A stretch of DNA of 64,000 bases from the NCBI RefSeq assembly GCF_046119375.1, contig NW_027362767.1, positions 262,446,001 through 262,510,000 of the forward strand, given 5' to 3'. Below the pieces are notes generated by a model. That model did not search any database. It was not told where the DNA came from and saw only the letters and a list, made by a program, of their open reading frames with translations. Origin of the DNA: Phyllobates terribilis (taxonomy: Eukaryota). Numbering within the stretch: position 1 is the first letter of the stretch; each line of letters opens with the position of its first letter. This document shows, piece after piece, positions 309 to 64,000 of the stretch. The translations under genes were made by a program, and so were the position numbers.

Positions 309-3725
<3,417 letters not shown>

Positions 3726-4110
3726 GTCTGCTTCTGTGGAAGAGGCCGGGCACTGTAATAAATGAGGGTCTATATAAGGGGTCTGGGGCAGGTATATGGT
3801 TAGGGGGCCAGGTCAATGGGCAGTATAAGGTTAGGGGTCTTGTATAAGGTCAGGGGCTCCGGTATGGGGCCGGTATAAAGTTAGTGTTCCTGGTCAGGGG
3901 TCGGGTCCGGGGCAGGTATAAGGTTAGGGTGTCCGGATATGGTTCATGTCGCTTTCACACAGTAAATCCTGCCCGGTGTCTCGGTTACACCAGGCAGGTG
4001 GCCCACACAGCCAGCACTGAGGAGCTATACTGAGGGGCTCAGTCACCACCGGTTGCTGACACAGCGGACAAAACATGACACCGTTGCGGGGAGAAAATAT
4101 CAGGAATTAC

Positions 4111-23737: not shown

Positions 23738-26700
23738 TCCCTGACTGTCTGTCTCTATCTCCTGGGGAGAGAACCGTCACTTTAAAATTGCTCACCTGGA
23801 TTCTGGAGCTACTGGAAACCTCATTTCCTAGTCCCTGGTAGAGAGATACCGGATTCCCACCAAACCTCTGGCTGAACCATTGTCAGTCGCCTCCGTGGAT
23901 GGAAGACTCCTTCCGGTGACCATCCTGCTCGTCACTGAACCCATAACCCTGCAGGTGGGAATGCTGCACTCTGAGAAGATCTCCTTCCATGTGCTGTCCG
24001 GACTCTCTCACTCCCTATTGCTAGGTCTACCCTGGCTCCAGACACATGAACCCGTGCTGAACTGGCAATCCGGTGAAGTACTCCGGTGGGGGCAGGATTG
24101 CCATAGGACCTGCCTGGTTCCGGTTCACCCGGCTCGTCCTCCACCTACCCCGGCTAATTTACCCGGTTTACCGGCACCTTACTGGTCCTATGCAGATGTC
24201 TTCGGTAAAAAGGAAGCAGAGACACTGCCACCTCATAGGCCATATGATTGCCCGATCGACCTGGTACCCGGCGCCACTCCACCCCATGGGAGTATTTACC
24301 CGTTGTCGTCAGCCGAAACACGAGCCATGTCGGAGTACATCGAGGAGAATCTGGCCAGGGGATTCATCCGGAAATCTACCTCCCCGGCTGGAGTCAGATT
24401 CTTCTTCAAGAAGAAAGATGGTTCTTTACGCCCCTGTATTGACTATAGAGGACTCAACCTAATCACGGTAAAAAACAAATACCCCCTGCCGCTCATCTCC
24501 GAGATGTTTGACCGTCTTAAGGGAGCTAGGATCTTTTCCAAGCTAGATCTACGTGGGGTGTATAACCTGGTCCGAATCCATCAAGGAGACGAATGGAAGA
24601 CGGCATTCAATACCCGTGACGGTCACTATGAATACCGTGTGATGCCTTTCGGTCTCTGCAATGCTCCCGCAGTCTTCCAAGAATTGGTCAACAACATCTT
24701 CCGTGATCTTCTTTACTCTTGCGTGGTGGTGTACCTGGACGATATCTTGGTCTTCTCTCCGGATCTTCCCACACACCGGAGGGATGTTCGTCAGGTCCTG
24801 CTTAGGCTCAGGCAGAATCACCTCTATGCAAAATTCGAGAAGTGCCTCTTCGAGCAGACCTCTCTTCCATTCCTGGGCTATGTTATTTCCCAGACAGGCC
24901 TACGAATGGATCCCGAGAGGCTCTCTGCTGTCCTAAAAAGTGGCCCCGTCCAGAGGGGTTGAAGGCAATTCAGCGATTCCTGGGCTTCGCCAACTACTAT
25001 CATCTCTTCATCCCGCACTTCTCTTCCCGGACTGCTCCCATATCTGCGCTCACCCGTAAGGGAGCAAATCCCAAGGAATGGTCGCCCGAAGCTGAGGAGG
25101 CCTCTCTTTCTTTAAAGCAAGCCTTCTCCTCTGCCCCGGTGCTGCACCGTCCGGACTGCAACAAACAGTTCTACCTGGAGGTTGATGCTTCCTCCTCTGG
25201 AGCCGGAGCGGTGCTCACCCAAAAGTCTTCATCCGGGAGAATGGAAACCTGCGGCTTCTTCTCCAAGTCTGAGAGCAACTACTCCATAGAAGACCGTGAA
25301 CTGTTAGCCGTTAAATTGGCACTGGAGAAGTGGCGTTACCTGCATGAAGGGGCTCTATACCCGGTGATCATCTATAAGGATCACAAAAACCTGGCATATC
25401 TCCAGAATGCCCAAAGACTCAATCCGCGTCAAGGCCAGTGGTCTTTGTTCTTCGCCCGCTTCGAGTTCGTCCTACATTTCCACCCAGCGGACAAGAATGT
25501 CAAAGCCGACGCCTTGTCCCGATCCTTCCTGTCCTCCGATCAAGAGGAGGAGCCTATGCACATCATCGACCCCTCCAAAGTGAAGAATGTGGCCCCCTTG
25601 GATCTGACTCGTCTTCCACCCGGTAAGACGTTTGTAGCGGTACCAGATCGTGAGAAGGTTCTTCACTGGGGTCATTCATCTAAACTAGCCGGCCATGCTG
25701 GCCAAAAGAAGACCTTCCTGCTCATCACCCGGCATTACTGGTGGCCTACTCTGCGCAAGGATGTGGTAGACTTCGTCTCGGCCTGTTCGTCCTGTGCTCG
25801 CAACAAAGTTCCCAGACATCTTCCAGCCGGTCGCCTCCTGCCTCTTCCCGTACCTGCTGCCCCGTGGCAGCACATTGCTATGGACTTTATTACTGATCTC
25901 CCTGTTTCTGCCGGTTGTTCAGTCATTTGGGTGGTCGCCGACCGCTTCTCTAAGATGGCCCACTTCATCCCTCTGCCTGGTCTCCCGTCTGCATCGGAGC
26001 TGGCCAAGTATTTCTTCCGTCATATCTTCCGTCTCCATGGCCTACCCCTCCACATTGTGTCGGATCGAGGGGTTCAGTTCACCTCACGTTTCTGGAGAGC
26101 TACCTGTAAGCTACTGGATGTCACCCCGGATTTCTCCTCTGCTTACCATCCACAGTCCAATGGCCAAGTGGAGCGTATCAACCAAATCCTTACCAGCTAC
26201 CTCTGGCACTTTGTTAACGCTCACCATACCGATTGGGTGGAGCTCCTACCATGGGCCGAATTCTCCTACAACAACCATGAGAGCGAATCTACTTCTAAAT
26301 CCCCGTTCTTCGTGGTCTACGGTCAACTTCCTCGGATTCCGTTTCCCATCTCCGCCTCGGTGGACAACCCTGCCGCGGAGGCTCTTGTCAGCGAATTCTC
26401 AACCATTTGGGAAAATACTAGGTCCGCACTTCTTCAGTCCTCCGAGCGGATGAAGAGACTGCTGACAAGAGACGTCTGGATCCGCCTCAATTCCGCCCGG
26501 GAGATAAAGTCTGGCTCTCTTCCAAACATGTCCGACTCAAAATACCCTCCTATAAGTTAGGCCCTCGGTTCATCTGTCCATTTGAAATTCTCAAACAAAT
26601 CAACCCAGTGGCCTACAAGTTAAAACTCCCGGCCACCTTACGGATTCCCAACTCCTTCCATGTATCTCTCCTCAAACCAGTTGTGTTTAACTCTTTTTCC

Positions 26701-27064: not shown

Positions 27065-28676
27065 GAGTACAGACCAAAAGTTTGGACACACCTTCTCATT
27101 TAAAGATTTTTCTGTATTTTCATGACTATGAAAATTGTACATTCACACTGAAGGCATCAAAACTATGAATTAACACATGTGGAATTATATACTTAACAAA
27201 AAAGTGTGAAACAACTGAAAAAATGTCTTATATTCTAGGTTCTTCAAAGTAGCCACCTTTTGCTTTGATGACTGCTTTGCACACTCTTGACATTCTCTTG
27301 ATGAGCTTCAAGAGGTAGTCACCGGAAATGGTTTTCACTTCACAGGTGTGCCCGGTCAGGTTTAATAAGTGGGATTTCTTGCCTTATAAATGGAGTTGGG
27401 ACCATCAGTTGTGTTGTGCAGAAGTCAGGTGGATACACAGCTGATAGTACTACTGAATAGACTGTTAGAATTTGTATTATGGCAAGAAAAAAGCTAAGTA
27501 AAGAAAAACGAGTGGCCATCATTACTTTAAAAAATGAAGGTCAGTCAGGCCGAAAAATTGGGCAAACTTTGAATGTGTCCCCAAGTGCAGTAGCAAAAAC
27601 CATGAAGCGCTACAAAGAAACTGGCTCAAATGAGGACCGCCCCAGGAAAGGAAGACCAAGAGTCACCTCTGCTTCTGAGGATAAGTTTATCCGAGTCACC
27701 AGCCTCAGAAATCGCAGGTTAACAGCAGCTCAGATTAGAGACCAGGTCAATGCCACACAGAGTTCTAGCAGCAGACACATCTCTACAACAACTGTTAAGA
27801 GGAGACTTTGTGCAGCAGGCCTTCATGGTAAAATAGCTGCTAGGAAACCACTGCTAAGGACAGGCAACAAGCAGAAGAGACTTGTTTGAGCTAAAGAACA
27901 CAAGGAATGGACATTAGACCAGTGGAAATCTGTGCTTTGGTCTGATGAGTCCAAATTTGAGATCTTTGGTTCCAACCACGGTGTCTTTGTGCGACGCAGA
28001 AAAGGTGAACGGATGGACTCTACATGCCTGGTTCCCACCGTGAAGCATGGAGGAGGAGGTGTGATGGCGTGGGGGTGCTTTGCTGGTGACACTGTTGGGG
28101 ATTTATTCAAAATTGAAGGCATACTGAACCAGCATGGCTACCACAGCATCTTGCAGCGGCATGCTATTCCATCCGGTTTGCGTTTAGTTGGACCAGCATT
28201 TATTGTTCAACAGGATAATGACCCCAAACACACCTCCAGGCTGTGTAAGGGCTATTTGACCAAGACGGAGAGTGATGGGGTGCTACGCCAGATGACCTGG
28301 CCTTCACAGTCACCAGACCTGAACCCAATCGAGATGGTTTGGGGTGAGCTGGACCGCAGAGTGAAGGCAAAAGGGCCAACAAGTGCTAAGCATCTCTGGG
28401 AACTCCTTGAAGATTGTTGGAAGACTACCTCTTGAAGCTCATCAAGAGAATGCCAAGAGTGTGCAAAGCAGTCATCAAAGCAAATGGTGGCTACTTTGAA
28501 GAACCTAGAATATAAGACATTTTCAGTTGTTTCACACTTTTTTTTGTTAAGTATATAATTCCACATGTGTTAATTCATAGTTTTGATGCCTTCAGTGTGA
28601 ATGTGCAATTTTCAGTCATGAAAATACACAAAAATCTTTAAATGAGAAGGTGTGTCCAAACTTTTGGTCTGTGCTA
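27065..28676 (+). mobile_element. Full-length Tc1-family DD38E (Intruder-type) transposon, about 255-bp TIRs
   Basis: GAGTACAGACCAAAAGTTTGG ... CCAAACTTTTGGTCTGTGCTA; TA on the left, (AT)n on the right. Confidence 0.92.
27479..28435 (+). pseudogene. DD38E transposase with a TGG>TGA nonsense codon (27887-89) and a small C-terminal deletion
   Basis: ORFs 27479-27889 and 27932-28435 are in the same frame; WSDESKF, QQDNDPKH, SPDLNPIE with 38 residues between D and E. Confidence 0.9.
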
Positions 28677-48600: not shown

Positions 48601-51600
48601 TCACTTTTTTTTCTTGTTCGTCCAGGGCTGGGAGGAAGGAATGCTGGGGATGAAGAAAGGAGGGAGAAGGTTTCTGGTCATCCCTCCAGCACTTGGATAC
48701 GGTCCTCAGGGACTGACCGGCAGAATCCCTTCTAATGCCACCCTCCTGTTCGAAGTGGAAGTGAAGCGGGTGAGTGACGTTCTACTTTTGGAAGCCATAT
48801 TTTTTTTTTTTTAAATGATTGAGTCAACTATTGTCTGCACAGCTGTCCAAAAAGTATTGCTTCTACTGAGGCAGGAGGGATGTTCTTCATGATTTGCAGC
48901 AGGTGAACTAGTTTCCTGTTAATTAACCCTTTCCCAACATCCGCCATGTATGGCACATGTTGAGGCAAGAGAGCAGAGTTCTCTCCATACGTAGTGGGTG
49001 ACAGCCAGGGCCGGCTCCAGGTTTTTCTGGGCCCCGGGTGAAAGAGTCTCAGTGGGCCCCTTTAACACATACCACGATTCATGATGCACAGATACTGCAG
49101 AGAAATATAAATATATATATATATATAGTACAATGCTGAAGATTTCACTTCTTACATTACATGACCGATATCTATTGTAAATTCCACAATAGCTCAGAAA
49201 CCGGCGAATCGCTGCATACAGAATACTGGCCCCCATATAATGCTCCATACAGGATACTGGCCCCCATATAACGCTCCATACAGGATACTGGCCCCCATAT
49301 AACGCTCCATACAGGATACTGGTCCCCATATAACGCTCCATACAGGATACTGGTCCCCATATAACGCTCCATACAGGATACTGGTCCCCATATAACGCTC
49401 CATACAGGATACTGGTCCCCATATAACGCTCCATACAGGATACTGGTCCCCATATAACTCCATGCAGGCTGCCCCCCCCCCCCCCTTATAATGTCCCATG
49501 CAGGATGTCCCACCCCCCCCCCATATAATGCCCCATGCAGGATGTCCCACCCCCCCCATATAATGCCCTATGCTGGATGTCCGTCCCCCCCCCCCTCCCA
49601 TATAATGCCCCATGCAGGATGTCACTTCTCCCCCCCATGTAATGCTCTATGCAGGATGTCCCTTTCCCCCCATATAATGCCCTATGCGGGATGTCCCTCC
49701 CCCCCCATATAATGCCCCATGCAGGATGTCACTTCTCCCCCCCCCCCCATGTAATGCTCTATGCAGGATGTCCCTTTCCCCCCATATAATGCCCCATGGC
49801 TCCATACATTAAAAAAAAGAAATCAAATACTCACCTCACTCCTCCTCACCTGCTGCCGCTGCTGAGCTCCGGACTCCAGCGTCTTCCCGCTCTGTGCTGC
49901 GCTGTGACGGCTCAGGGGAGGGCGCGGTGGAAAGACGTCACTGCACCCTCTGACCTGAGACGTCACAGGGAGCGCAGAGCAGGAAGACAGCGGATCTGCT
50001 GAGGCACGGGGAGAGGTAAGTATCCGGCTGCCGGGGCCCTGAGCAAGCGGGGGAGAAGGGCGGGCGCTGATACCGCTCTCCTCCGCCCATAGCCCGGCGG
50101 GGTGCCCGACCGCCAGTGGGCCCCCCGCCTGCTCAGGGCCCCAGCATTTGCTCGGGTGCTGGCACCGACCCTGGTGACAGCTGTGTTGTACTGCTGACAC
50201 CTTCCTCTAACAGCCTCCGATGGTTAACCGCTTAAATGCCATTGTCAGTCTCTGACTACTGCATTTAAGTGTCTCAATTGCAGTGGAGCTTGGATTCAGG
50301 CTCCCATTGCCACCCGTCCTCGCCATCTTTATACTCTCATGCTAGGATCATTAATTTCACAGGATATTAAAGAATATAATGCAAGCAATCAAACAATCAC
50401 AGGTTCAAGTCCTATGGGGGTGGAAGGGCTAAAAAATACTGTGAAAACTATTACANNNNNNNNNNNNNNNNNNNNNNNNNNNNNNNNNNNNNNNNNNNNN
50501 NNNNNNNNNNNNNNNNNNNNNNNNNNNNNNNNNNNNNNNNNNNNNNNNNNNNNNNNNNNNNNNNNNNNNNNNNNNNNNNNNNNNNNNNNNNNNNNNNNNN
50601 NNNNNNNNNNNNNNNNNNNNNNNNNNNNNNNNNNNNNNNNNNNNNNNNNNNNNNNNNNNNNNNNNNNNNNNNNNNNNNNNNNNNNNNNNNNNNNNNNNNN
50701 NNNNNNNNNNNNNNNNNNNNCCCAACTTTTTTATAGCTCAAAAATAAAAGAATAAAATAAATAATGTATTTGGTTTTGCAGTGTCCAAAGAGTCTGATCT
50801 ATCAGAATCTAAAATGATTCCACACCCGAACCTCAGTAAAAAGCTTTCCTTATGTTCCCCAAAATAGTATTGATAAAAACCGCAGCTTGACACGCAAAAA
50901 ACGAAGCCCTCACACCGCTCTATAAAAAATCTCCAAAAAAAAAAGTTAGATGTCAGGAAATATTGATGCAAATTAAATTTTTTTTTCTTTTTTTTTATAT
51001 TTTAGAATTCTTTATAAACCGCTAAAGCATTATAAAACTAATATTAGTACCACTGTAATCTTCTTGACCTGAAGAATCATGTCACCAGCTCATTTTTACT
51101 GCTCATTGAATACAGTAAAAAAAAAAAAAAAAAAAAACGAAAAATAAAATTGGCTGTGGCTTTGACAGGGTTAATATCCAATGTGTTTTTTTTTTTTAAA
51201 TTAGATGAAACAAAAGGAGCAGGGATCTGACCGGCAGAGCATCGGTTCCCGGGACTCCCCAGTGTCCATCACAGACAGTATGCCTGTCGAGAGTCTACCG
51301 CAGCCGCCAACATCGGTGCCACCAAAACCTGGGTACGTGCTGATGCCGGCGCTGCAACCAACATGACGCTCTTACAGATCCATTACAGCATGTCATCCAA
51401 GTTTCCTCATGCTTGTGCCATTTACTCATTTATTCTCTTTTTCAGGGATCCGGATGTTCGTGCAAAGTCCAACTCCATCAGCGAGCAGTTGGCAGTAAGT
51501 GACCCGGGGCTGGCAGTAGCTGACCCGGGGCTGGCACGTTAAAGCTTATCAATCATTATTGAAGTTTTCACTGATTGGCAGAATCCTGATATGGCGAAGG

Positions 51601-54600
51601 CGAAGCTGATCTCCCGTATGGCAAAAATGGGTCAGCCCATGTTACCCTTCCTGGCGGGAAGTTCCACTCCACAACCGGACTCCAGTGACTCTGAGATCGA
51701 GGTAAAATGCTTCTCTCACATCGATAGACACCTACGACACTAAAGAGTAACCCATAAGAGTAATCCATATATTCTGCAACTTGCTAATACACTTAGTCTC
51801 CATTCCCTTACATTTCCATGATCTCTGCGTGCTTTCAGTGAATAGTAGCATTCTTTTCACTTCTAATCCCAATACTTTCCGCTACATAGAATTTTCTACA
51901 GTTGCATCCAGACACTTTATATGCTGGGATTGCCTGCATTTACACACCGCAAGGCTTATCTTTACACAGTTTTAGCTCTTCGTTAAAAAATAGTACGTTT
52001 CAATTCCTCGCCCTTTACAAGATCTTTGCCATACGAGAATGGAAACAAAGATTTAATAAATAGATATAAAACATAAGAAAAAAAATTAGTGCTGTGCCAC
52101 ATGAAATCTAAATGTATTTGCCTCAGTATAAAGGATTAAATCAATAAATAAATGTATATATATTTTTTTACAGGATCCTAACGCACAGAGAATTTCACCG
52201 TATCCCACAGCTCCGCTCCCTGTCCGGCCCACCCCACAGATTAGCCAACCCCCTCATATAGCAGCTCCAGGTAATGTGCTTACCCACCTGGGCACTTCAC
52301 TCCTTTACTTTCGTTTTGGACTTTTTAATGGTTCCATTTACAGTCCCTCAGCAGCAGCCAGTGCCGGGGCTCGCCGCCTCGTCTGCCGCCCTGTTACCCG
52401 TCGGGCACCTCCCCTCCCAGGGCGTTCCTGCAGCTCCCGGCTTCCAGGTCAGTACAACTTTTAGCATTTGGTAGATATAACTGTAGAGCCATCTGGTGGT
52501 GGAGTTTGGAAATTGCAAGTGCCAAACTAGTTTATTTGCGAGTTGGTGGCATTGACTTTCTAATAATAAAATGTCTTGCATCCTTGTAAAAATCAGTTTA
52601 TCAATTTTTGCCAGTCATATTAATTGTGCATTCCCCTAATTATCTGCCATTGCTTCCTGGAAACCTGCGGGCAGCTGTAATAAATATTATCTTTCAGCCG
52701 TACACTGGAATCCAGTATACGTATCCGCAGAACCCTACAACCCAGCTGCAGCCAGTCGGCCATGTCTACCCTGCTCCCATACAGCAGCCGGCGACTTACC
52801 AAGGTAAAGGAGCTATTCATTAAGCTGCCGTGATTTTGCAAAGCCGCATGGTTTGTTTTGTCAATGTGATTCTGACTGCAAGCTGAGATCTTGGAAAATA
52901 GTCACCATTCCCATGCTGCTGTCAATCACTGACAGCGGAAAATATATGTGACATGATTGCACCTCCTCCTATCAGCCATCCGAGACTCTATCACGGGTGC
53001 TGATGGCTTGTTACGACAGCTGGGGACTGAAAAGTAAAAAAGTTATGGCTCTTAAAAGAAAGTGAGGAAAATTGGTGGGAAGGGGTTAATGTATTAAGGC
53101 CTTTCGTTGTGTACTTTCAGCCTCGGGTGATGTCACTTCTTTCCTGATGACGGAGGCACGACAGCAGAGCACCGAGATCCGGATGGGCATCGGCAAAGTC
53201 ATTGATAAAATAGACACCCTGGCCTCTAAGGTGAGGAGACCCCCGCATCCTCCGCTCTGCAGTGTCCTCTGCTTCTGGCCATCTCACTTTTGTGTCTGTC
53301 AGAGCAGGTGGACAATCTGCAGAAGGAGAATTCATCCGGAGCCTCTCATCTACTCCCCGGAATATCATCCATCACCATGGAAAGCGCCATGATCATGAAT
53401 AATATCCAACGTATCATCCAGGTGAGAGCAGCGCGGGGCGGCAACTCGTCTCTATGCTGATCCGGATCGTTGGGGTCCTGGCAGGCATCAAAGGGTTACA
53501 TTTTATTTTACCTACCAGGAAAATGAATGTCTGAAGCAGGAAGTTCTGGATAAGAGCAGCCGGATAGAAGAGCAGAACGTGAAGATCGGGGAACTGATAA
53601 ATCGTAACCAGAGGTACGAAGGGGCGAAGATTAGGAATGATTGCTGGGTGTACGGCCGATCAGCAGGAGCTTAACCAGTTATACTAATTTACTTTTCTGT
53701 TTGATTTTGACATTGTTGCATTTACCATCTTCATCCTCTCCGGGAAGATATGTAGAGCAGAGTAATATGTTAATGGAGCAGAGGAACGACTCTCTGAAGA
53801 ACTCAACTGAAAGCACACAAGCCAAGATGCTCCATGCCATGCAAGAAAAGGTATTTATAAGCCACTAGGTGCCTGTGCTTAATTCACCTGTCACTGCCTT
53901 ATTTATAGGGATTATAATTACTACAATACTGTCCTCTATGTACAAGAATATAACTACTATAATACTGCCTCCTATGTACAAGAATATAACTACTATAATA
54001 CTGCTCCTATGTACTAGAATATAACTACTATAATACTGCTCCTATGTACAAGAATATAACTATTATAATACTGCTCCTATGTACAAGAATATAACTACTA
54101 TAATACTGCTCCTATGTACAAGAATATAACTACTATAATACTGCTCCTATGTACAAGAATATAACTACTATAATACTGCCCCCTATGTACAAGAATATAA
54201 CTACTATAATACTTCTCCCTATGTACAAGAATATAACTACTATAATACTGCCCCCTATGTACAAGAATATAACTACTGTAATACTGCCCCTATGTACAAG
54301 AATATAACTACTATAATACTGCTCCTATGTACAAGAATATAACTACTATAATACTGCTCCCTATGTACAAGAATATAACTACTATAATACTGCTCCTATG
54401 TACAAGAATATAACTACTATAATACTGCTCCTATGTACAAGAATATAACTACTATAATACTGCCCCTATGTACAAGAATATAACTACTATAATACTGCCC
54501 CCTATGTACAAGAATATAACTACTATAATACTGCTCCTATGTACAAGAATATAACTACTATAATACTGCCCCTATGTAAAAGAATATAACTACTATAATA

Positions 54601-57600
54601 CTGCCCCCTATGTACAAGAATATAACTACTATAATACTGCCCCCTATGTACAAGAATATAACTACTATAATACTGCCCCCTATGTACAAGAATATAACTA
54701 CTATAATGCTGCCCCCTATGTACAAGAATATAACTACTATAATACTGCCCCCTATGTACAAGAATATAACTACTATAATACTGCCCCCTATGTACAAGAA
54801 TATAACTACTATAATACTGCTCCCTATGTACAAGAATATAACTACTATAATACTGCCCCTATGTACAAGAATATAACTACTATAATACTGCTCCTATGTA
54901 CAAGAATATAACTACTATAATACTGCTCCCTATGTACAAGAATATAACTACTATAATACTGCTCCTATGTACAAGAATATAACTACTATAATACTGCTCC
55001 TATGTACAAGAATATAACTACTATAATACTGCCCCTATGTACAAGAATATAACTACTATAATACTGCCCCCTATGTACAAGAATATAACTACTATAATAC
55101 TGCTCCTATGTACAAGAATATAACTACTATAATACTGCTCCTATGTACAAGAATATAACTGCTATAATACTGCATCTATATGCAAGAATATAACTACTAT
55201 AATACTGCTCCTATGTACAAGAATATAACTACTATAATACTGCCCCTATGTACAAGAATACTGGGAAACGGATAAATCCAGCGACAAACATCTTTCTTAA
55301 ACACTTGTCTTTATTAAATGTGTTCCATAAAAAAATCACATTCCAGTTAAAATGCCAGACAGACGCGTTTCGATCTTCCGACCTCAGTCACTGCACACAA
55401 TAAATCCGGATACATGCTACTTCTTATGTCATTTCCTATGGGTGCCTGTGATCTCCTTGACCAATAGAAATGAAGCACTGATATATATATATATATATAT
55501 ATATATGAGTACATAAAGACATACCCAAGCAGCCATACATCCTCATAAACACACATGAAGCATTTATAATTATAGCAAAGGGAGCTACTTCCAATCCTTA
55601 TTAATAATAATATATCAAGTCCTGTCTGATGTTAATGCCTTCCGGTGATCTAGTTTCCAGGACATAAATCCACCAGGTCTCACCATTAGTCAGCTTTCTT
55701 TTCATATCCCCCCTCTTTCTGGTGGTTTAACCCTCTCTATCCCTCTGACCTCAAAGGATGACACATCCCCATTATGTGCTATAGTGAAGTGTTCGGATGC
55801 AGCGGAGGTTTTATGTAAGATTCTACTTGTAGCATCTGAGAGATGTCTTCTAATTCTGACCTTCAGAGGGCGCTAGTACATCCCACGTATTGCAGGTTAC
55901 CAAGGTTACAAGTGATAAGGTAGGTTACATTAGTGGTATTACAGTTAATAAATGAATCCACATTATGCACACACGTTGTGTTACTGAGGATGTGACATTG
56001 TTGGAGTTGCATATACTTGCAGCATGTACACACCGTGTGTCCGCATTTATATCTGCCTTTCATTGCCATCTAATTTTTATTCAATGAAGAGCTCTCTGTA
56101 ACAAACAAGCTTGGGGAGAGAATGTCCCCTAAACCTGGTGCCCGTTTGGCTACAAAATTCACTGGATTTGTCAGAATTTGCTCCAATTTAGTGTCCTGGT
56201 GGAGTAAGGTGACACGTTTTTAATGATATCAGTGATGGCTGTGAACTGTGGGCTGTATGTGGTGGAGATGGTAGCCCCTCTATCAGGCTCACTTGTATCT
56301 TTTTTCCCATCCTGCAGCATGTTAACCCTTTGTTCTCCACTATCTGATTAGCCCTGTTCAGCATCCACCTGGGGTATTTCCTGGGCATTAGTCCCCCTGC
56401 AGTCTGCTCAGCCTGGTGTTCATAGCAGGACGGGAGGGTAGAGTTCCTCTTAAATCTGAACAGTTCTCCTACCGGGACATTTTTTATAACATGCCGTGGG
56501 TGACATGAAGTGGCAATCTCCTTTCTATAAGGGGAAACTGTAACCCCAATATCCTTGTTAAAGGTTAGGGAGACATCCAAAAAATGTATAGTATTTTCCT
56601 CTATATGAGAAGTAAATTTCAAATTCATTTCATTGTTGTTATCCACAAACTCTGACCCCAGTCCTCTAGGACCACCCCATATCAGGAGCAGGTCGTCCCA
56701 ATATCGACCATACCACCTGATATAGGAGGAGAAGGGACTGGTGCCAGAAATAAATGAACAGGTTCTCCCATTCTGACATGAAAATATTAGCAATAGATGG
56801 TGAGAAGCCCACTCACACCGGAGCACCTTGTCATAGACAGAATTCCCCTTTAAAGGAGAAATAATTATGTTTTAAATGGAATTCTGTAGCCATGACTATA
56901 AACTCCTGGATTGGTCTACAGCAGCTACTAAACTTCCCTAGGTGTCTGGATAGAATTGAGATGGCAGGTCGTGTGGTATGGAGGGATATAGGGCAGCGAC
57001 ATCGCAAGTCACCCATAGACATGTGTCTGGTCTAGGGATACAATAACATGTTTGTGTCTTTCAAAAACCCAGGTAAATTATAGGTCAAAGGTTGTAGGTA
57101 CATATCTACCCATGAGCTTCATCGTTCACTGTAATACCCTATTCCTGCCACAATGGGCCTTAGGGCCGGTGGAAATGTCATCTTGTGTGTCTTGGGTAGT
57201 GAATGGAAAATAGGGGTAATAGGGGATTGTACAGTGAGTATGGAAATAATTCAGACCCCTTTAAATGTTTCACTTTGTTTCATTGCAGCAATTGGGTAAA
57301 TTCTAAAAAGTTCTTTTTTTCTCATTAATGTACACTGTGCACCCCATCTTGACTGAAAAAAAACAGAAATGTAGAAATTTTTGCAAATTCATTAAAAAAG
57401 AAAAGCTGAAATATCACATGGTCATAAGTATTCAGACCCTTTGCTCAGACACTCATATTTAAGTGACATGCTGTCCATTTCCTTGTGATCCTCCTTGAGA
57501 TGGTTCTACTCCTTCATTGGAGTCCAGCTGTGTTTAATTAAACTGATAGGACTTGATTTGGAAAGGCACACACCTGTCTATATAAGACCTCACAGCTCAC

Positions 57601-60600
57601 AGTGCATGTCAGACCTAATGAGAATCATAAGCTCAAAGGAACTGCCCAAGGAGCTCAGAGACAGAATTGTGGCAAGGCCCAGATCTGGCCAAGGTTACAA
57701 AAGAATTTCTGCATTACTTAAGGTTCCTAAGAGCACAGTGGCCTCTATAATCCTTAAATGGAAGAAGTTTGGGACCACCAGAAGTCTTCCTAGACCTGGC
57801 CGTCCAGCCAAACTGAGCAATCTTAGGAGAAGAGCCTTGGTGAGAGAGGTAAAGAAGGACCCCAAGATCACTGTGGCTGAGCTCCAGAGATGCAGTAGGG
57901 AGATGGGAGAAAGTTCTACAAAGTCAACTATCACTGCAGCTCTCCACCAGTTGGGCCTTTATGGCAGAGTGGCCAGACGGAAGCCTCTCCTCAGTGCAAT
58001 ATTGTATCTAGACTAATGTCACTTTGAAAAATGAAGGCTTTTTGCGCATAATTTGGCCAATTTATGTGTGCCCATCAACCACGACAAGGTCACCTTCGTA
58101 TGATGGGAAACTACGCTATGCTACCACTGGATATGCCACTCTTGGGCTGTAAGCCTGTATGGACAATATGTCTCTGCTTGGGCTTTTAACCTACAATGTA
58201 GTTTTGTGCCATGTCTGTGATCTGCTTTTTTTCATCAACATTAAACAACTGAATGAACATCCTCCAAGCCCGGTGATTCCATAATTTTTGCCAGGGGTTG
58301 TATAATACTGCCCCCTATGTACAAGAATATAACTACTATAATACTGCTCCTATGTACAAGAATATAGGTACTATAATACTGCTCCTATGTACAAGAATAT
58401 AACTACTATAATGCTGCTCCTATGTACAAGAATATAACTACTATAATGCTGCCTGCTATGTACAAGAATATAACTACTATAATACTGCCCTCTATGTAAA
58501 AGAATATAACTACTATAATACTGCCCCCTATGTATAATAATATAACTACTATAACTACTATAATACTGCTCCTATGTACAAGAATATAATTACTATAATA
58601 CTGTCCTGTATGTACAAGAATATAACTACTATAATACTGCTCCTATGTACAAGAATATAGCTACTATAATACTGCTCCTATGTACAAGAATATAACTGCT
58701 ATAATACTGCTCCTATGTACAAGAATATAACTACTATAATACTGCTCCTATGTACAAGAATATAACTACTATAATACTGCTCCTATGTACAAGAATATAA
58801 CTACTATAATACTGCTCCTATGTACAAGAATATAATTACTATAATACTGCCCCCTATGGACAAGAATATAACTACTATAATACTGCTCCTATGTACAAGA
58901 ATATAACTACTATAATACTGCTCCTATGTACAAGAATATAACTACTATAATACTGCTCCTATGTACAAGAATATAACTGCTATAATACTGCTCCTATGTA
59001 CAGGAGTTTGGAGAACTGTTAGCATACTTGCTCTGTCTGCCGCATGTTGTGTCCCCAACACCCCAACTTCATTGCTCTGTTATTCTCGGGCTTGTTCTCA
59101 CTGTCGCTGCTTTCTCTTTCCCAGCATGCTTTGCATATGGATCTGGGCAGGTATCAGGTGAGGTCTGTGGGGACTTCCTTCCCTTCCCTTCCTTTCTTTC
59201 CTTTCCCTTTCCTTCCCTTTCCTTTTCTTTCCTTATATAATATGATACATTGCACTGCCAAGATAGGTTGCAGATCATCATAATTTGTCACTCTGCAACT
59301 GTTAGAAAACTACAACTCCCAGCATGCCTTGCCATCTTCAGGAATTACAGTTTTCTCACAGTTGGAGAACTGCTGTATTAGTGATCTCTCCATGATGGCG
59401 TCGCCCACCATCCGCTCCGTCTTACAGGCCAAAGTAGCAGAGGAGCTCTCCTCCGCCACCGGCCAGTTGTCCCGCCTTCAGCTGGAGGTCACCGCCTATC
59501 AGAAGAAGGAGATGGATCTCCGGACACAACTCGCTGCCTCCTTGCAAGAAGCGGAGAAGTGTCGGGTGGAGCTCGACTCTGTGCAGGCTCAGCTCATAGG
59601 TTAGTGCACTCTGCAGGCTCAGCTCATAGGTTAGTGCACGCTGCAGGCTCAGCTCATAGGTCAGTGCACGCTGCAGGCTGAGCTCATAGGTTAGTGCACG
59701 CTGAGCTCATAGGTTAGTGCACGCTGCAGGCTGAGCTCATAGGTTGGTGCACGCTGCAGGCTGAGCTCATAGGTTAGTGCACGCTGAGCTCATAGGTTAG
59801 TGCACGCTGAGCTCATAGGTTAGTGCACGCTGCTGGCTGAGCTCATAGGTTAGTGCACGCTGCTGGCTGAGCTCATAGGTTAGTGCACGCTGCTGGCTGA
59901 GCTCATAGGTTAGTGCACGCTGCAGGCTGAGCTCATAGGTTAGTGCACGCTGCAGGCTGAGCTCATAGGTTAGTGCACGCTGCTGGCTGAGCTCATAGGT
60001 TAGTGCACGCTGCTGGCTGAGCTCATAGGTTAGTGCACGCTGCAGGCTGAGCTCATAGGTTAGTGCACGCTGCAGGCTGAGCTCATAGGTTAGTGCACGC
60101 TCCACTGTGGCCCCTCGGGTCACCAACCAGCAGCGGTGTAATGACTCCATCTATACCCAGAGCTGAAAGAGACGTCAGAGCAGACCAAAAACCGCGCCAA
60201 AACTGAAAAGGACAGCCGCCGCACCCTGGGGCTCAGACTCTCTGCCCTAGAAGAAGAAATCTCAGACTTGAAGATCGAGAAGGAGAATCTGGAGAAGGTG
60301 ACGCACTTCTGCTTTACTGTAATAGAAATCAGTCTGTGTGTGTACTGCAGTGTAAAGTACGGGGGATTTTAGACTAACATAACTTCCAGTAGACTGTGTT
60401 GGAGTCTTCATGTAAGTAGGATATATTTCCTGTGTGTGATGCAGAGTCTGACTGAGAGAAAGAAGAAGTCGCAGCAGGAGCGGCGGCGGGCTGAGGAGGA
60501 GCAGGAGGAGCTGCGAAGATCCTTCCAGGAGGAGAACGAGAACCTCAGGCAACAGCTGAAGAAAAGCCGCGAGCAGGTGACCGCCGAACAGGTCAGTAGG

Positions 60601-63600
60601 AGGCAGAGCGGCGGGTGTGCGGACAGTGGCCGCCCTCTGCACCAGGCCATACAGAAATATTACTGCACAGCGCCTGAATAATTCTCTATAAAGCAGCTGG
60701 ATACACAGGGCCACGTAGTGTGACGGCAAATGGCGTTACACAGGATCCTGGCATAGTGGAGTGAAGGTTAGTGTATGTATCCCTGGTGGTCAGGGGTAGT
60801 AAAGCAATGACAGTGTCAGCATCCTTAGTCATCTAAAGCAGTGAAAGGGTTAATGACCGTATGCTTGCTGTGGATTTAGGGCAGCAAACAGGTTAATATT
60901 CCTATTCTTGATGGTCTAAGACAGTGAAAGGGTTAATGTGAGGATCCCTGGTGGTCTAGGGCAGTAATAGGGTTAAAGGGGTATTCCCATCTCCAAGATC
61001 CTATCCCAATACAGGACCTTAGGTATCCATTGCTACGTCCACTGATAAAGTCACAGTTAGTTAGCTAGTTGCTAGTGGTCTTAACCATGGATTCCTAAGG
61101 TCCTGCGATGCCTACACATGAGGTAAGAGAGATAGCGAATCAAAAATACTATACTACATTTCTAATTGGAGGTATTTGCTAATGTTATTATTACATTGCA
61201 TCCAACCTTCTTCAGCCTCCAACTACACGTGGGACACCGCTCCCAACGCGTTTCGTCACCTCAGCAACTCAGACTCAGACGAAACGCGTTGGGAGCGGTG
61301 TCCCACGTGTAGTTGGAGGCTGAAGAAGGTTGGATGCCCCACTACATGGAGCTGTCTTAAAGCTGGAAGGCGAGAACTGACATTTCATAAGGTGAAGTCG
61401 TTCCATTAGCATACACAAGGTTTGAGTGCTCACCATAATTATATAAAGTGTATCAAGGTCCGTAAGCGCTGAGACATTGTCTTGACAGCTCCACTATTAT
61501 CTGCCACTAATCTCGGTTATGTCACAGGTGGACTATATCTGGTTAATATACCGTTGAATTCCTGTATATAACGATGTATTGATTGGTGTGGTTATTTCTT
61601 ACCACAGGCAGGCATTTACTTGATTTTAGGTCCTATTGACTTTTGTATTAATAATTTTACCTATTCATATTAAAAGTTTTGTTTTAACTCTTTACACCAC
61701 AATATCTGCTTTATTATCTGCTTTACTGTGTTCTTACCTTAGAAACCCCATTGCTGTACTCAGTAAAGAGATTAATATAAATATCTCTAGTGGCTCAGGT
61801 TAAAAAAAGGGGTTAATTTAAGGATCCCTGGTGGTCTCGGGCAGTAAAGGGGCTAATGTAAGGATCCCTGGTGGTCTCGGGCAGTAAAGGGGCTATTGTA
61901 AGGATCCCTGGTGGTCTCGGGCAGTAAAGGGGCTATTGTAAGGATCCCTGGTGGTCTCGGGCAGTAAAGGGGCTATTGTAAGGATCCCTGGTGGTCTCGG
62001 GCTGTAAAGGGGCTAATGTAAAGATCCCTGGTGGTCTCGGGCAGTGACCCTGTTGTGGCGGTCACATGCTTACACTCTTGCTGTCCTGTCTGTGTGCAGC
62101 TCTCCTCCTCTTCCTCCCGGGATCGCGATGAGCAGAGGCTGATGGAGCTCCAGGATCAGGCCGCCCAGTTACAGCCCCTGAAAGAGAAGGTGATTGGGGG
62201 TCTCCATGTATAGGCCTCTATTGATTGTGCAGATTCTGGGTCACTCATGCCGCTCCATGTCTCCTTGCAGTGCACCCAGTTACAGAGCCAGATAACCTCC
62301 CTGAGAGACCAACTCGGAGAAATGCGCGATCGGGAGAGCGACCTGCTCTCTGCGAAAGACCGAGTGGAGCAGGTGAGGGGACACTGTTATTAACAATTAT
62401 TAAAGGTTTTTTTTTTTTCAGTTTTGTATAATTAAGTTGCAATAATTTGCATAATTTCCTGTTTCTCACCATTTATTCCCCACCCTAATATCTCTGCTTG
62501 CTGACATTGAATGCAAACATTCCCTTTTCTATTCACAGCATAATGTTTCCATTTACTGACCACAAGCAGAGATATTGAAAATGGTGAGGAATTTATAGGA
62601 AAAGTATATTAGAAAGTTGCATTAATTATGTAATAAAAAGTTGTGTAACTGGTAAAACTTTGTTTTATTTCTTTCCTGATATTAATGTATTTGTTTTGAT
62701 CACATTTGCGCATCATGACCTCGTCCGTCACAATTACCAATCTCTACTGCTGCCACAAGCAGAAATTATCCCGACTACGAGAGAGGTCAGAGCAGCTAGA
62801 GCCCCTGCTGCTGCAGGTGAGTCCAGAGCCATCCTGACCACAAACGCACGCATGCACACGATCTGACAATCTGGACCCTTTTGGTAACCTTTGTCTCCTC
62901 CTAGTGTACACAGCTCCAGACGCAGGTCGCTTCGCTAACGAGTCAGCTCGGGGACGCTAGTACGACTAAAGAAGAAGGCCGTCCGCTGGGCGATCCTGCC
63001 GAGGAGGTGAGACGCCACGTGATGTCTTAGTCTTCGGTGAGGCCGGGAATAGATGGCAACTAAGGCTGCGCAGTTGCATGACGGATGCATTGAGCTGTAA
63101 CCTATAGGGTCCCTATATTTGTGGGGTCCCAAATCAAAATATCCCGTGGGTCTCCAGTTGTTTGAAAACTGAAACTCCCACCATGGTCATGCTGGGACTT
63201 GCAGTTTCTCATCAGGAGGAGAATCACAGGTTGCAGACTTTTATTATACAAAGTGATGTCATATGATGCCATTCTCTTTACTTTTAGGATCACTGGATTT
63301 ATGCATTAATTGTCATTTAATTAATATTCATGATGTCTAATTAACATTTGTGAAGGTGGGTACTGATTATTATCCTGCTTGTCCCCACTTCCTTAGGTGA
63401 AGAAGATCATGAACGGAGTTTTCCAGTCCCTCCGGAAGAAGTTTGACTTGGAGGAGTCATACACAGGACGGGCAGTGCTGGGCGCCATCATGAGCACCAT
63501 CAAGGTAGAGGTCGCCATTATGGTTCAGGGACATCGACGCACTAGCGAGTTTGTTACGGTGTATCAGTTTTGGTAGTGGCCTGTGCTGCTGTGTTTAGCT

Positions 63601-64000
63601 CACAGAGGATTGCCTACACCGGTACATCATATGTGTGAGAAAAGTAGCCTGTATGCAAAAATCAAAGCAAGCAGAGATCTTGAATGGTGTGGGGTGCTTT
63701 ATATGCAGATGAATGTACAACCTCTTGTATCTTTTCAGGCAACCACACTTCAGTTACTGAATAAATCTCAGGACGAGCCGCCAGCAGGAAGCAGCAGTGA
63801 GGAGGAGACAGAGGAGGCGGACGGGGATGAGGAGGCGGAAAGAGCTGCACACCCTGGGCCACATGCTTTTGTGGCGACTCCTCCAAATCTAAGTGTACCC
63901 CCTTCTGCAGACCATGCACAGATTGACGAGACCCCCGAAACTAAAGAAGTTGTCAATAGGTATCCAAACCAAGAAAAATCCACAACAAAGGAGGAGGAAG
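42689..64000 (+). CDS. FKBP15: FK506-binding protein 15 (FKBP133/WAFL), partial at the 3' end. Exons 42689-42738, 45903-46012, 46161-46242, 46673-46742, 46835-46909, 47525-47623, 47700-47849, 48100-48168, 48626-48769, 51205-51332, 51446-51494, 51582-51701, 52174-52270, 52344-52447, 52698-52803, 53121-53230, 53308-53421, 53519-53613, 53748-53850, 59428-59599, 60161-60297, 60445-60591, 62100-62189, 62271-62372, 62763-62816, 62905-63006, 63397-63504, 63739->64000
   Basis: [34 protein letters not shown]; WH1-like region; FKBP domain [28 protein letters not shown]; [17 protein letters not shown]; FLMTEARQ; coiled coil; [22 protein letters not shown]. All junctions GT-AG and phase-consistent (over 1000 codons). 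Confidence 0.96.
43555..44235 (+). repeat. About 62-bp tandem repeat (about 11 units) in FKBP15 intron 1
   Basis: Unit GGCTGATAACAGGGAGTAATAGATTGTACTCACCTGTCCTACAGTCACCTCTCCCCAGTAAT. Confidence 0.92.
44752..45105 (+). repeat. Degenerate tandem repeat of about 54 bp (about 6 units)
   Basis: Recurring GATGGAAGCATCGCCCC.TAGTGGTTGGTTATTC. Confidence 0.85.
46377..46611 (-). repeat. 97-bp minisatellite family, third array (reverse orientation, FKBP15 intron 3)
   Basis: GTACACAGTGACTGCACCAGCAGAATAGTGAGTGCAGCTCTGG is the reverse complement of the unit. Confidence 0.92.
49006..50173. mobile_element. hAT-type non-autonomous element (1168 bp) with a 31-bp minisatellite (49216-49460) and C-rich repeats (49460-49800)
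   Basis: TIR CAGGGCCGGCTCCAG / CTGGCACCGACCCTG; perfect 8-bp TSD GTGACAGC at 48998-49005 and 50174-50181. Confidence 0.9.
50456..50720. other. Assembly gap (265 N)
   Basis: Run of n in FKBP15 intron 9. Confidence 1.
53913..55260 (+). repeat. 35/36-bp AT-rich minisatellite, left part (FKBP15 intron 19)
   Basis: Unit TATGTACAAGAATATAACTACTATAATACTGCTCC. Confidence 0.96.
55262..57230 (-). mobile_element. Degenerate Penelope-like element (RT + GIY-YIG) on the minus strand
   Basis: [84 protein letters not shown] (stop 55601-03). Confidence 0.85.
57232..57997 (+). mobile_element. 5' half of an IR/DR-type Tc1 element
   Basis: TA|CAGTGAGTATGGAAATAATTCAGACCCC; inner repeat AGTATTCAGACCCTTT near 57428; [32 protein letters not shown], then truncated. 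Confidence 0.85.
57998..58300. mobile_element. Terminal fragment of a different Tc1-like family
   Basis: Ends GGTGATTCCATAATTTTTGCCAGGGGTTG|TA, which is not the inverted copy of the TIR at 57232. Confidence 0.6.
58301..59002 (+). repeat. 35/36-bp minisatellite, right part
   Basis: Same unit and orientation as 53913-55260. Confidence 0.95.
59175..59233 (+). repeat. (CCTTT)n-like polypyrimidine microsatellite
   Basis: CTTCCTTCCCTTCCTTCCTTTCTTTCC... Confidence 0.85.
59581..60101 (+). repeat. 30-bp (some 23-bp) tandem array built from the FKBP15 exon 20/intron 20 junction, 18 copies
   Basis: Unit CTGCAGGCT(C/G)AGCTCATAG|GTTAGTGCACG; the first copy is the authentic donor at 59599|59600. Confidence 0.95.
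61198..61730 (+). mobile_element. Probable 5'-truncated PLE 3'-end fragment beginning with a perfect 60-bp inverted repeat, inserted in a T2-like MITE
   Basis: Arms 61198-61257 and 61278-61337 are exact reverse complements containing GACGAAACGCGTTGGG; a T-rich tail follows; flanks resemble a TTAAAGGGGTATTCCC T2-MITE. PLE assignment is inferred. Confidence 0.6.
61808..62046 (+). repeat. 40-bp tandem repeat (6 units); degenerate copies at about 60775-60980
   Basis: AGGATCCCTGGTGGTCTCGGGCAGTAAAGGGGCTA(A/T)TGTA at 61821, 61861, 61901, 61941, 61981, 62021. Confidence 0.93.
62763..62816 (+). CDS. FKBP15: FKBP15 candidate extra exon 25 ([18 protein letters not shown])
   Basis: AAGCAG tandem acceptor, consensus donor CAG|GTGAGT, phase 0/0, paralogous to the end of exon 23. 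Confidence 0.7.

Follow-up and report, generated by a model that had tools for sequence, protein, structure and literature searches.

The FKBP15 locus and its module exons

We analyzed a 64,000-nucleotide (nt) stretch of Phyllobates terribilis DNA (contig NW_027362767.1, positions 262,446,001–262,510,000 of the forward strand), referred to below as the window. The plus strand carries FKBP15 from approximately 45.9 kb to the window end, with the FKBP-domain exon at approximately 48.6–48.8 kb, and the element under study is a two-exon unit of this gene that occurs twice in tandem. The first unit, module A, consists of the last 18 amino acids (aa) of exon A1 together with exon A2, and the second, module B, consists of exons B1 and B2; exon C follows (Table 1). 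A public protein model of this genome (P0094, 1208 aa) gave exact matches to A1, A2, B1, B2, and C at the predicted borders, and two further FKBP15 isoforms of this genome have the same module region. P0094 has the domains of an FKBP15 orthologue, PF00254 at residues 190–282 (E 1.4e-27) and then PF23649 (FKBP15-like) at residues 543–766 (E 1.2e-82), and the modules start just C-terminal of the end of the latter domain at residue 766. The best full-length relatives of P0094 were annotated frog FKBP15 proteins, with those of Ranitomeya and Dendrobates nearest and those of 20 or more further frogs behind them. Exon C was searched against a representative protein library, which gave vertebrate FKBP15s, and a region search from one of the matches gave approximately 25 anuran FKBP15s. 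The window thus holds the 3′ part of the FKBP15 gene of a dendrobatid-like neobatrachian frog.

Exons A1, A2, B1, and B2 are each preceded by AG and followed by GT, and their lengths are all multiples of 3 (phase 0/0). The short introns A1–A2 and B1–B2 are 81 and 88 nt long, respectively. A first-pass annotation of this DNA had proposed the coordinates of these four exons, the 102-nt sizes, the 81- and 88-nt introns, and the phase 0/0, and all of them were confirmed in the sequence. In the orthologue alignment, exon A1 is homologous to the ancestral vertebrate exon that closes with ...QL.PL.EK. The end of B2 is the ancestral ...P..DPAEE tail, which precedes exon C in all vertebrates. The introns after A2 (62373–62762) and after B2 (63007–63396) are both exactly 390 nt long without sequence similarity to each other (z 0.5). 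The equal lengths were considered as a trace of the duplication and were taken as a coincidence, since the Eleutherodactylus counterparts measure 453 and 492 nt.

Table 1. Positions of the FKBP15 features around the two modules (numbering of the window).
Feature	Position	Strand	Description
Upstream constitutive FKBP15 exon	60445–60591	+	49 aa, end ...VTAEQ; contains the LKKSR anchor; exact mapping of P0094
Exon A1	62100–62189	+	90 nt, 30 aa; AG/GT borders; P0094 residues 778–807
Exon A2	62271–62372	+	102 nt, 34 aa, start CTQLQ; second half of module A
NAGNAG acceptor (tandem AAG-CAG) ahead of B1	62757–62762	+	behind a weak polypyrimidine tract
Exon B1	62763–62816	+	54 nt, 18 aa; first half of module B, copied in truncated form from the A1 tail
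Exon B2	62905–63006	+	102 nt, 34 aa, start CTQLQ; second half of module B
Exon C	63397–63504	+	36 aa, VKKIMNG..., strongly conserved; query and C-terminal anchor

Paralogy of modules A and B

We compared the exons of the two modules with one another using shuffle tests. A2 and B2 are identical at 11 of the 17 N-terminal residues and at 13 of the 34 residues overall, and their BLOSUM62 local score of 61 was not reached in any of 5000 composition-preserving shuffles (19.2 ± 4.0; z 10.5). The tail of A1 and B1 share 6 of 18 residues (z 3.8, p 0.003), and no significant similarity was observed for the crossed pairs (A2–B1, z 1.3; A1–B2, z 1.05). The identities of 11/17 and 6/18 are those that the first-pass annotation had reported. 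Among the 15 other neobatrachian species, 6–13 of the 18 residues are identical between the A1 tail and B1, with a value of 1/18 in Rhinoderma, the B1 of which is shortened and out of register.

At the nucleotide level, the first 17 codons of A2 and B2 agree at 13/17 first positions, 14/17 second positions, and 4/17 third positions, the last value being at the level of chance. The Nei-Gojobori proportion of synonymous differences (pS) between the copies was 0.87 in the window and 0.79 in Eleutherodactylus, which indicates saturation in both. The 81- and 88-nt introns showed no similarity to each other (z 1.5), nor did the sequences that precede A1 and B1 (z −0.5). A tblastn search with each half-module against positions 59000–64000 of the window found exactly these two copies and nothing else at or above 18 bits, which rules out general coiled-coil repetitiveness as the source of the resemblance. 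No hidden or third copy of the module was detected in the window or in the DNA of Spea, Pelodytes, or Hymenochirus. The pattern is that of a tandem exon duplication: the neighbouring exons are similar, A2 and B2 have the same length (102/102 nt) in phase 0, and the outgroups are single-copy. The paralogy of the A and B exons is therefore confirmed and lies far beyond chance. Two observations concern the window species itself: its B1 has four replacements relative to that of Ranitomeya and several relative to that of Dendrobates (comparison with P0093 and P0092), and its module B lies on a long terminal branch (0.23 vs 0 for module A).

Distribution among vertebrates and age of the duplication

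Two modules were found in 16/16 neobatrachians read, which represent Hyloidea, Myobatrachidae, and Ranoidea: three dendrobatids including the window species, Mixophyes, Pseudophryne, Dendropsophus, Hyla, Engystomops, Bufo, Eleutherodactylus, Rhinoderma, Hyperolius, Aquarana, Rana, Mantella, and Pyxicephalus. The layout of 18 + 34 + 18 + 34 aa is shared by 15 of the 16, and B1 is six residues shorter in the Rhinoderma model. The genomic locus of Eleutherodactylus (L005) has the same exon sizes as the window with canonical splice sites, and its introns differ in length (93, 453, 399, and 492 nt). A single module was present in the proteins of the frogs Spea, Pelodytes, Ascaphus, and Bombina and in those of Ambystoma, Latimeria, birds, turtles, squamates, mammals, sharks, and teleosts. 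The mammals read were five non-human genera (Ursus, Otolemur, Cavia, Ovis, and Panthera), and their sequences agree with the single QLQEK/CLALQAQ...DPSEK module that the first-pass annotation had given for human FKBP15. In the DNA of Spea, the three introns around the unit (112, 179, and 103 nt) leave no space for further exons, and in that of Pelodytes no second copy was detectable within 9 kb around the unit.

The split between Neobatrachia and Pelobatoidea is dated at 169–185 million years ago (Ma) and the branching of Heleophryne at 140–152 Ma (Hime et al., PMC7823230). The sampled clades span the next split, which separates the group of Hyloidea and Myobatrachidae from that of Ranoidea, and the duplication is thus placed between approximately 185 Ma and somewhat less than 140–152 Ma. 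Taken together, we regard a tandem duplication of a two-exon, 52-residue unit in the neobatrachian stem, approximately 140–185 Ma, as highly probable. It weighs against this placement that the sampling leaves out Heleophryne, Sooglossidae, Calyptocephalella, Megophryidae, Alytidae, and caecilians. A lineage-specific lengthening had been suggested in the first-pass annotation; this holds insofar as non-frog vertebrates and four frogs, either early-branching or pelobatoid, have one module, and the lineage is to be widened from a species or family to all sampled crown Neobatrachia. No paper on this duplication was found in literature searches that combined FKBP15 with exon duplication or with frogs. 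It is a previously undescribed instance of a well-known process, and the exons are already contained in public gene models.

Selection and splicing of the module exons

We determined dN/dS (the ratio of nonsynonymous to synonymous divergence) between the window and Eleutherodactylus, which was 0.37 for module A, 0.26 for module B, and 0.10 for exon C (52, 52, and 36 codons, respectively). Among neobatrachians, the four module exons had a mean protein identity of 58–70%, as compared with 91% for exon C. These values show purifying selection on both copies, which, together with the isoform and transcript data below, identifies them as functional coding sequence. The earlier view of an old, selected duplication agrees with the saturated synonymous sites (pS 0.87) and with a dN/dS of 0.26–0.37.

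All four exons are included in 51 of the 53 annotated isoforms that span the region (11 frog groups), among them all three isoforms of this genome. In the other two, a single exon is skipped: B1 (18 aa) in Mixophyes X3 and A2 (29 aa) in one X. tropicalis model. No annotated isoform among the 53 drops a whole 52-aa module or carries one copy instead of the other. In Dendrobates, isoforms X1 and X3 each have one extra Q at B1, which fits the AAG-CAG acceptor that is also present in the window. The Logan contig L004 (SRR16343608, 3457 nt) encodes a 707-aa ranid FKBP15 fragment with both modules in one uninterrupted open reading frame (ORF), which indicates that the contig is derived from spliced RNA. 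A search for transcript-derived protein fragments spanning residues 770–935 of P0094 gave no match at E ≤ 1e-10.

We examined whether these data fit duplicated exons that act mainly as an alternatively spliced cassette, so that isoforms of different tissues or stages with one or two modules would tune rod length. Such a cassette would be helped by the phase 0/0 of all four exons and by the weak pyrimidine tract and NAGNAG motif at the B1 acceptor, and the B1 and A2 skips and the one-Q variants of Dendrobates are of the kind that it would produce. It conflicts with the retention of four exons in 51/53 isoforms and with the lack of any whole-module skip, and the skips that were seen remove half a module, which breaks the repeat instead of shortening it cleanly; the ranid transcript contigs also hold both modules. 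We therefore consider a cassette very improbable. The alternative splicing put forward in the first-pass annotation is mostly unsupported, being limited to single-exon skips and the NAGNAG variant. The annotated isoforms point, with high probability, to an essentially constitutive inclusion of both modules, with alternative splicing at most minor. A point on the other side is that inclusion in this species rests on annotation pipelines, a transcript from another family, and conservation.

The same data bear on the reading that the likeness of the exons is a chance product of Q/L/E-rich coiled coils or that one pair consists of unexpressed pseudo-exons from gene predictors. Coiled-coil composition is indeed biased, and the similarity of A1 and B1 taken alone is weak here (6/18). 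Against this stand the z of 10.5 for A2 and B2 under composition-preserving shuffling, the absence of any other matching rod exon, the fact that 16 species have kept the frame, length, and splice sites of both copies for over 140 million years (My) with a dN/dS of 0.26–0.37, and the spliced ranid transcript with both copies. This reading is effectively refuted.

An optional insert of 11 aa distinguishes the FKBP15 isoforms of this genome (window approximately 59100–59160; P0197 residues 626–636), and many other frogs have FKBP15 isoform pairs that differ by 11 aa. The insert is probably a conserved alternative micro-exon.

Two modules in pipoid frogs

A two-module arrangement at the same position of the gene also occurs in X. 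laevis, X. tropicalis, Hymenochirus, and Rhinophrynus. The first-pass annotation had asked for an alignment of orthologues from Xenopus, other frogs, fish, and amniotes; the two modules of Xenopus and the other pipoids do not refute its reading and do alter the picture that it gave. The exons of the Hymenochirus locus (L003) map as 84/90/75/96 nt, as compared with 90/102/54/102 nt in the window, and its last exon is truly 93 nt because the 96 nt include a valine that exon C also supplies. In X. tropicalis, A2 has 29 aa and B1 has 28 aa, as judged from the residues missing in the model without A2. Pipoids thus have a second first-half exon (25–28 aa) that copies the first in full, and that of neobatrachians is a truncated copy of 18 aa; A2 encodes 29–33 aa in the former and 34 aa in the latter.

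We constructed a maximum-likelihood tree of 52 module units, the resolution of which is limited by its 38 ungapped columns. The 16 neobatrachian A copies formed one clade (96/76) and the 16 B copies another (97/77). The two were joined in a common clade (98/92) to which Pelodytes and Spea were successive sisters, and all pipoid copies fell outside. Approximately unbiased (AU) tests rejected the pairing of neobatrachian with pipoid copies, both A with A (p 0.005) and crossed (p 0.002), which are the topologies that one duplication would leave if no conversion followed. A single duplication within Pipoidea was not rejected (p 0.25). Lineage-specific states occur in individual columns: column 33 is L in both neobatrachian copies and Y in Pelobatoidea and non-frogs, and the near-universal Q of column 23 is lost in 8/8 pipoid copies. 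The tree, the AU tests, and the exon sizes suggest that the same exon pair was probably duplicated independently in Pipoidea and in Neobatrachia.

In an alternative history, a single duplication in the ancestor of Pipanura would have been followed by loss in Pelobatoidea via unequal crossing-over and by gene conversion in the pipoid and neobatrachian stems. Both clades carry two modules at the same position with near-identical total segment lengths (122–128 aa in neobatrachians and 125–132 aa in pipoids), tandem repeats readily undergo conversion as well as deletion, and the unrejected single duplication within Pipoidea is compatible with such a history. Furthermore, the first-half exons of Rhinophrynus are identical over 18 aligned residues, so that homogenisation or very recent duplication does occur. 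This history is opposed by the rejection of both cross-clade pairings (p 0.005 and 0.002), by the nesting of the 98/92 clade of neobatrachian A and B copies with Spea and Pelodytes, and by the different exon borders (B1, 18 vs 25–28 aa; A2, 34 vs 29–33 aa). No relic of a second copy was found in the DNA of Spea or Pelodytes, and the paralogous synonymous sites are saturated in two neobatrachians, which shows that no recent conversion took place. It also costs one gain, one loss, and at least two episodes of conversion, as compared with two gains. We regard the single Pipanura duplication as unlikely. Three points count against two independent duplications, namely that the module tree rests on 38 columns only, that concerted evolution of tandem copies could mimic independent duplications, and that loss of a module in Pelobatoidea by unequal crossing-over is mechanistically easy.

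In the FKBP15 of Rhinophrynus dorsalis (P0099, residues approximately 790–915), the first module keeps a ...PPATDNTKE tail that resembles the ancestral end. This tail and the identical first-half exons are signs that the duplication in that lineage is much younger or that its copies were homogenised.

Predicted structure and proposed mechanism

An AlphaFold2 monomer model was computed for residues 690–939 of P0094 with an alignment of 23 frogs (mean predicted local distance difference test score (pLDDT) 82; predicted template modelling score (pTM) 0.27). The model contains one helix that extends to residue 777 and is briefly interrupted where A1 begins with a run of serines. Residues 783–880 (98 residues, pLDDT mostly >90) form the next, unbroken helix, which spans A1, A2, B1, and B2 up to its 21st residue; the B2 tail (881–889) is predicted to be disordered and is followed by the exon C helices. 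The structure prediction that the first-pass annotation had called for therefore gives, for the monomer, one 98-residue helix through both modules. A simple count of strong hydrophobic residues gave a 3-4 spacing that is continuous across the A2–B1 junction, with a three-residue register shift near the conserved Pro of each module, which fits 52 = 7 × 7 + 3. In the window, only 2 of the last 17 residues of A2 are identical to the ancestral proline-containing ...D.TEE tail that B2 keeps, and the A2 tail is conserved among neobatrachians as a charged, helix-compatible sequence. The corresponding model of X. laevis has a low-confidence break between the modules at a TSSAS stretch in the A2 tail, in contrast to the continuous helix of the window protein.

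On the basis of this model, the uninterrupted helix that closes the rod on its C-terminal side would have grown roughly twofold through the duplication, from approximately 46 residues to approximately 98. At approximately 0.15 nm per residue, 52 residues would add roughly 7–8 nm of rod between the FKBP15-like domain and the VKKIMNG segment. It tells against this picture that it is built on a monomer AlphaFold2 model (pTM 0.27) and a crude heptad count, and that the conserved Pro in each module may kink the helix.

We propose the following sequence of events. A unit of 52 codons, comprising 18 codons from the end of one exon, the short intron after it, and the next exon of 34 codons, would have been duplicated in the neobatrachian stem, after the split from Pelobatoidea (169–185 Ma) and before Hyloidea and Myobatrachidae parted from Ranoidea (<140–152 Ma). 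Both copies would have remained intact, been spliced in constitutively, and been maintained by purifying selection. The tail of the upstream copy (A2) presumably lost the ancestral proline-containing linker and became helix-compatible, as a result of which the 3-4 hydrophobic spacing runs through the new A2–B1 junction. The most likely outcome would be a rod, or spacer, of greater length that links the N-terminal WH1-like/FKBP part to the conserved C-terminal segment. Mammalian FKBP15 has been reported to reach endosomes through its central coiled coil (PMC2850539) and associates with the WASH complex and retromer (VPS35) (PMC4024763). By extension from these reports, the added length might influence endosome, WASH, or retromer function.

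Segment length and exon turnover in the rod

We measured the length of the segment from the conserved LKKxR anchor to exon C. It was 134–143 aa in sharks, teleosts, the coelacanth, the salamander, and sauropsids, 102–108 aa in mammals, 73–77 aa in single-module frogs, 122–128 aa in neobatrachians, and 125–132 aa in pipoids. The 31-aa counterpart of exon A1 is missing in mammals. None of the frogs examined has the ancestral upstream FKBP15 exon of approximately 50 aa (QAELESQWEAKC...QLEEK), which is present in sharks, teleosts, the coelacanth, the salamander, sauropsids, and mammals. A tblastn search for this exon in four frog loci (window positions 60592–62099, L001, L002, and L003) gave no match. 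The segment of single-module frogs is shorter because all frogs are without this exon, and the two duplications returned the segment to near its ancestral length (within approximately 10 aa). This part of the rod has thus undergone repeated gain and loss of in-phase exons.

These lengths may be taken to mean that rod length is under stabilising selection and that the duplications in Neobatrachia and Pipoidea are a recurrent, convergent compensation for the exon loss in the frog stem. We put this forward only tentatively and consider it rather doubtful. Four single-module frog lineages have persisted since they branched approximately 170–220 Ma, which indicates that the extra length is not essential.

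Other features of the window

A minisatellite with a 40-bp unit occupies positions 61806–62045 (6 copies, 96% matches); it is intronic and ends 54 nt before the A1 acceptor. Large minisatellites with 35-bp and 30-bp units lie in FKBP15 introns (58301–59002, 59582–60101, and 54100–54900), and a run of 265 N, either an assembly gap or a masked stretch, lies inside an FKBP15 intron at 50456–50720. Upstream of the gene, the translations were read as a long retrotransposon pol ORF at 24806–26557 (584 aa, RNase H/integrase-like) and as a Tc1/mariner-like transposase over two adjacent ORFs at 27461–28432. Exon-like ORFs on the minus strand (2551–2784 and 3561–3812) resemble the N-terminal part of the splicing factor PRPF4, presumably the product of a neighbour gene on the opposite strand.

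Significance and comparison with known systems

Among the partners of the WASH complex and retromer, FKBP15 with its long rod is poorly understood. Frogs offer a natural series of rod lengths, with one module (Ascaphus, Bombina, Spea, and Pelodytes), two continuous modules (Neobatrachia), or two modules with a predicted break (Xenopus). This series, together with the independent exon losses in frogs and mammals, could be used to test the part of rod length in endosome binding or in the association with WASH and retromer. The duplication itself is a clean and datable multi-exon, in-frame event; it has stayed fixed for over 140 My, and a sister lineage probably underwent a parallel one. The mechanism is ordinary, and the value of the case is descriptive and comparative rather than conceptual.

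The closest known system is FKBP15 (WAFL) as it occurs, with one module, in other vertebrates. The gene is the same, with FKBP_C (PF00254) followed by the FKBP15-like domain (PF23649) and with the same exon C, and the ancestral unit likewise consists of two exons, the first ending in ...QL.PL.EK and the second running from (C/Y)..LQ.Q... to ...D.(T/A)EE. The window gene differs in having the unit twice, and frogs differ in lacking the upstream exon of approximately 50 aa. The two-module FKBP15 of pipoids is similar to that of the window in the tandem arrangement of the same exon pair, its position, the in-phase exons, and the segment length, and differs in its exon sizes, in pipoid-specific states, and in the placement of its copies outside the neobatrachian A + B clade.

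A sizeable minority of metazoan genes hold tandemly duplicated exons, many of which are used in a mutually exclusive manner. The module exons resemble this class in that adjacent paralogous exons are equal in length and phase and are absent from outgroups. They are distinct from it in two respects: two exons were copied as one unit, and both copies are included together in the annotated isoforms instead of being mutually exclusive, so that the result is a longer protein and not alternative versions of it.

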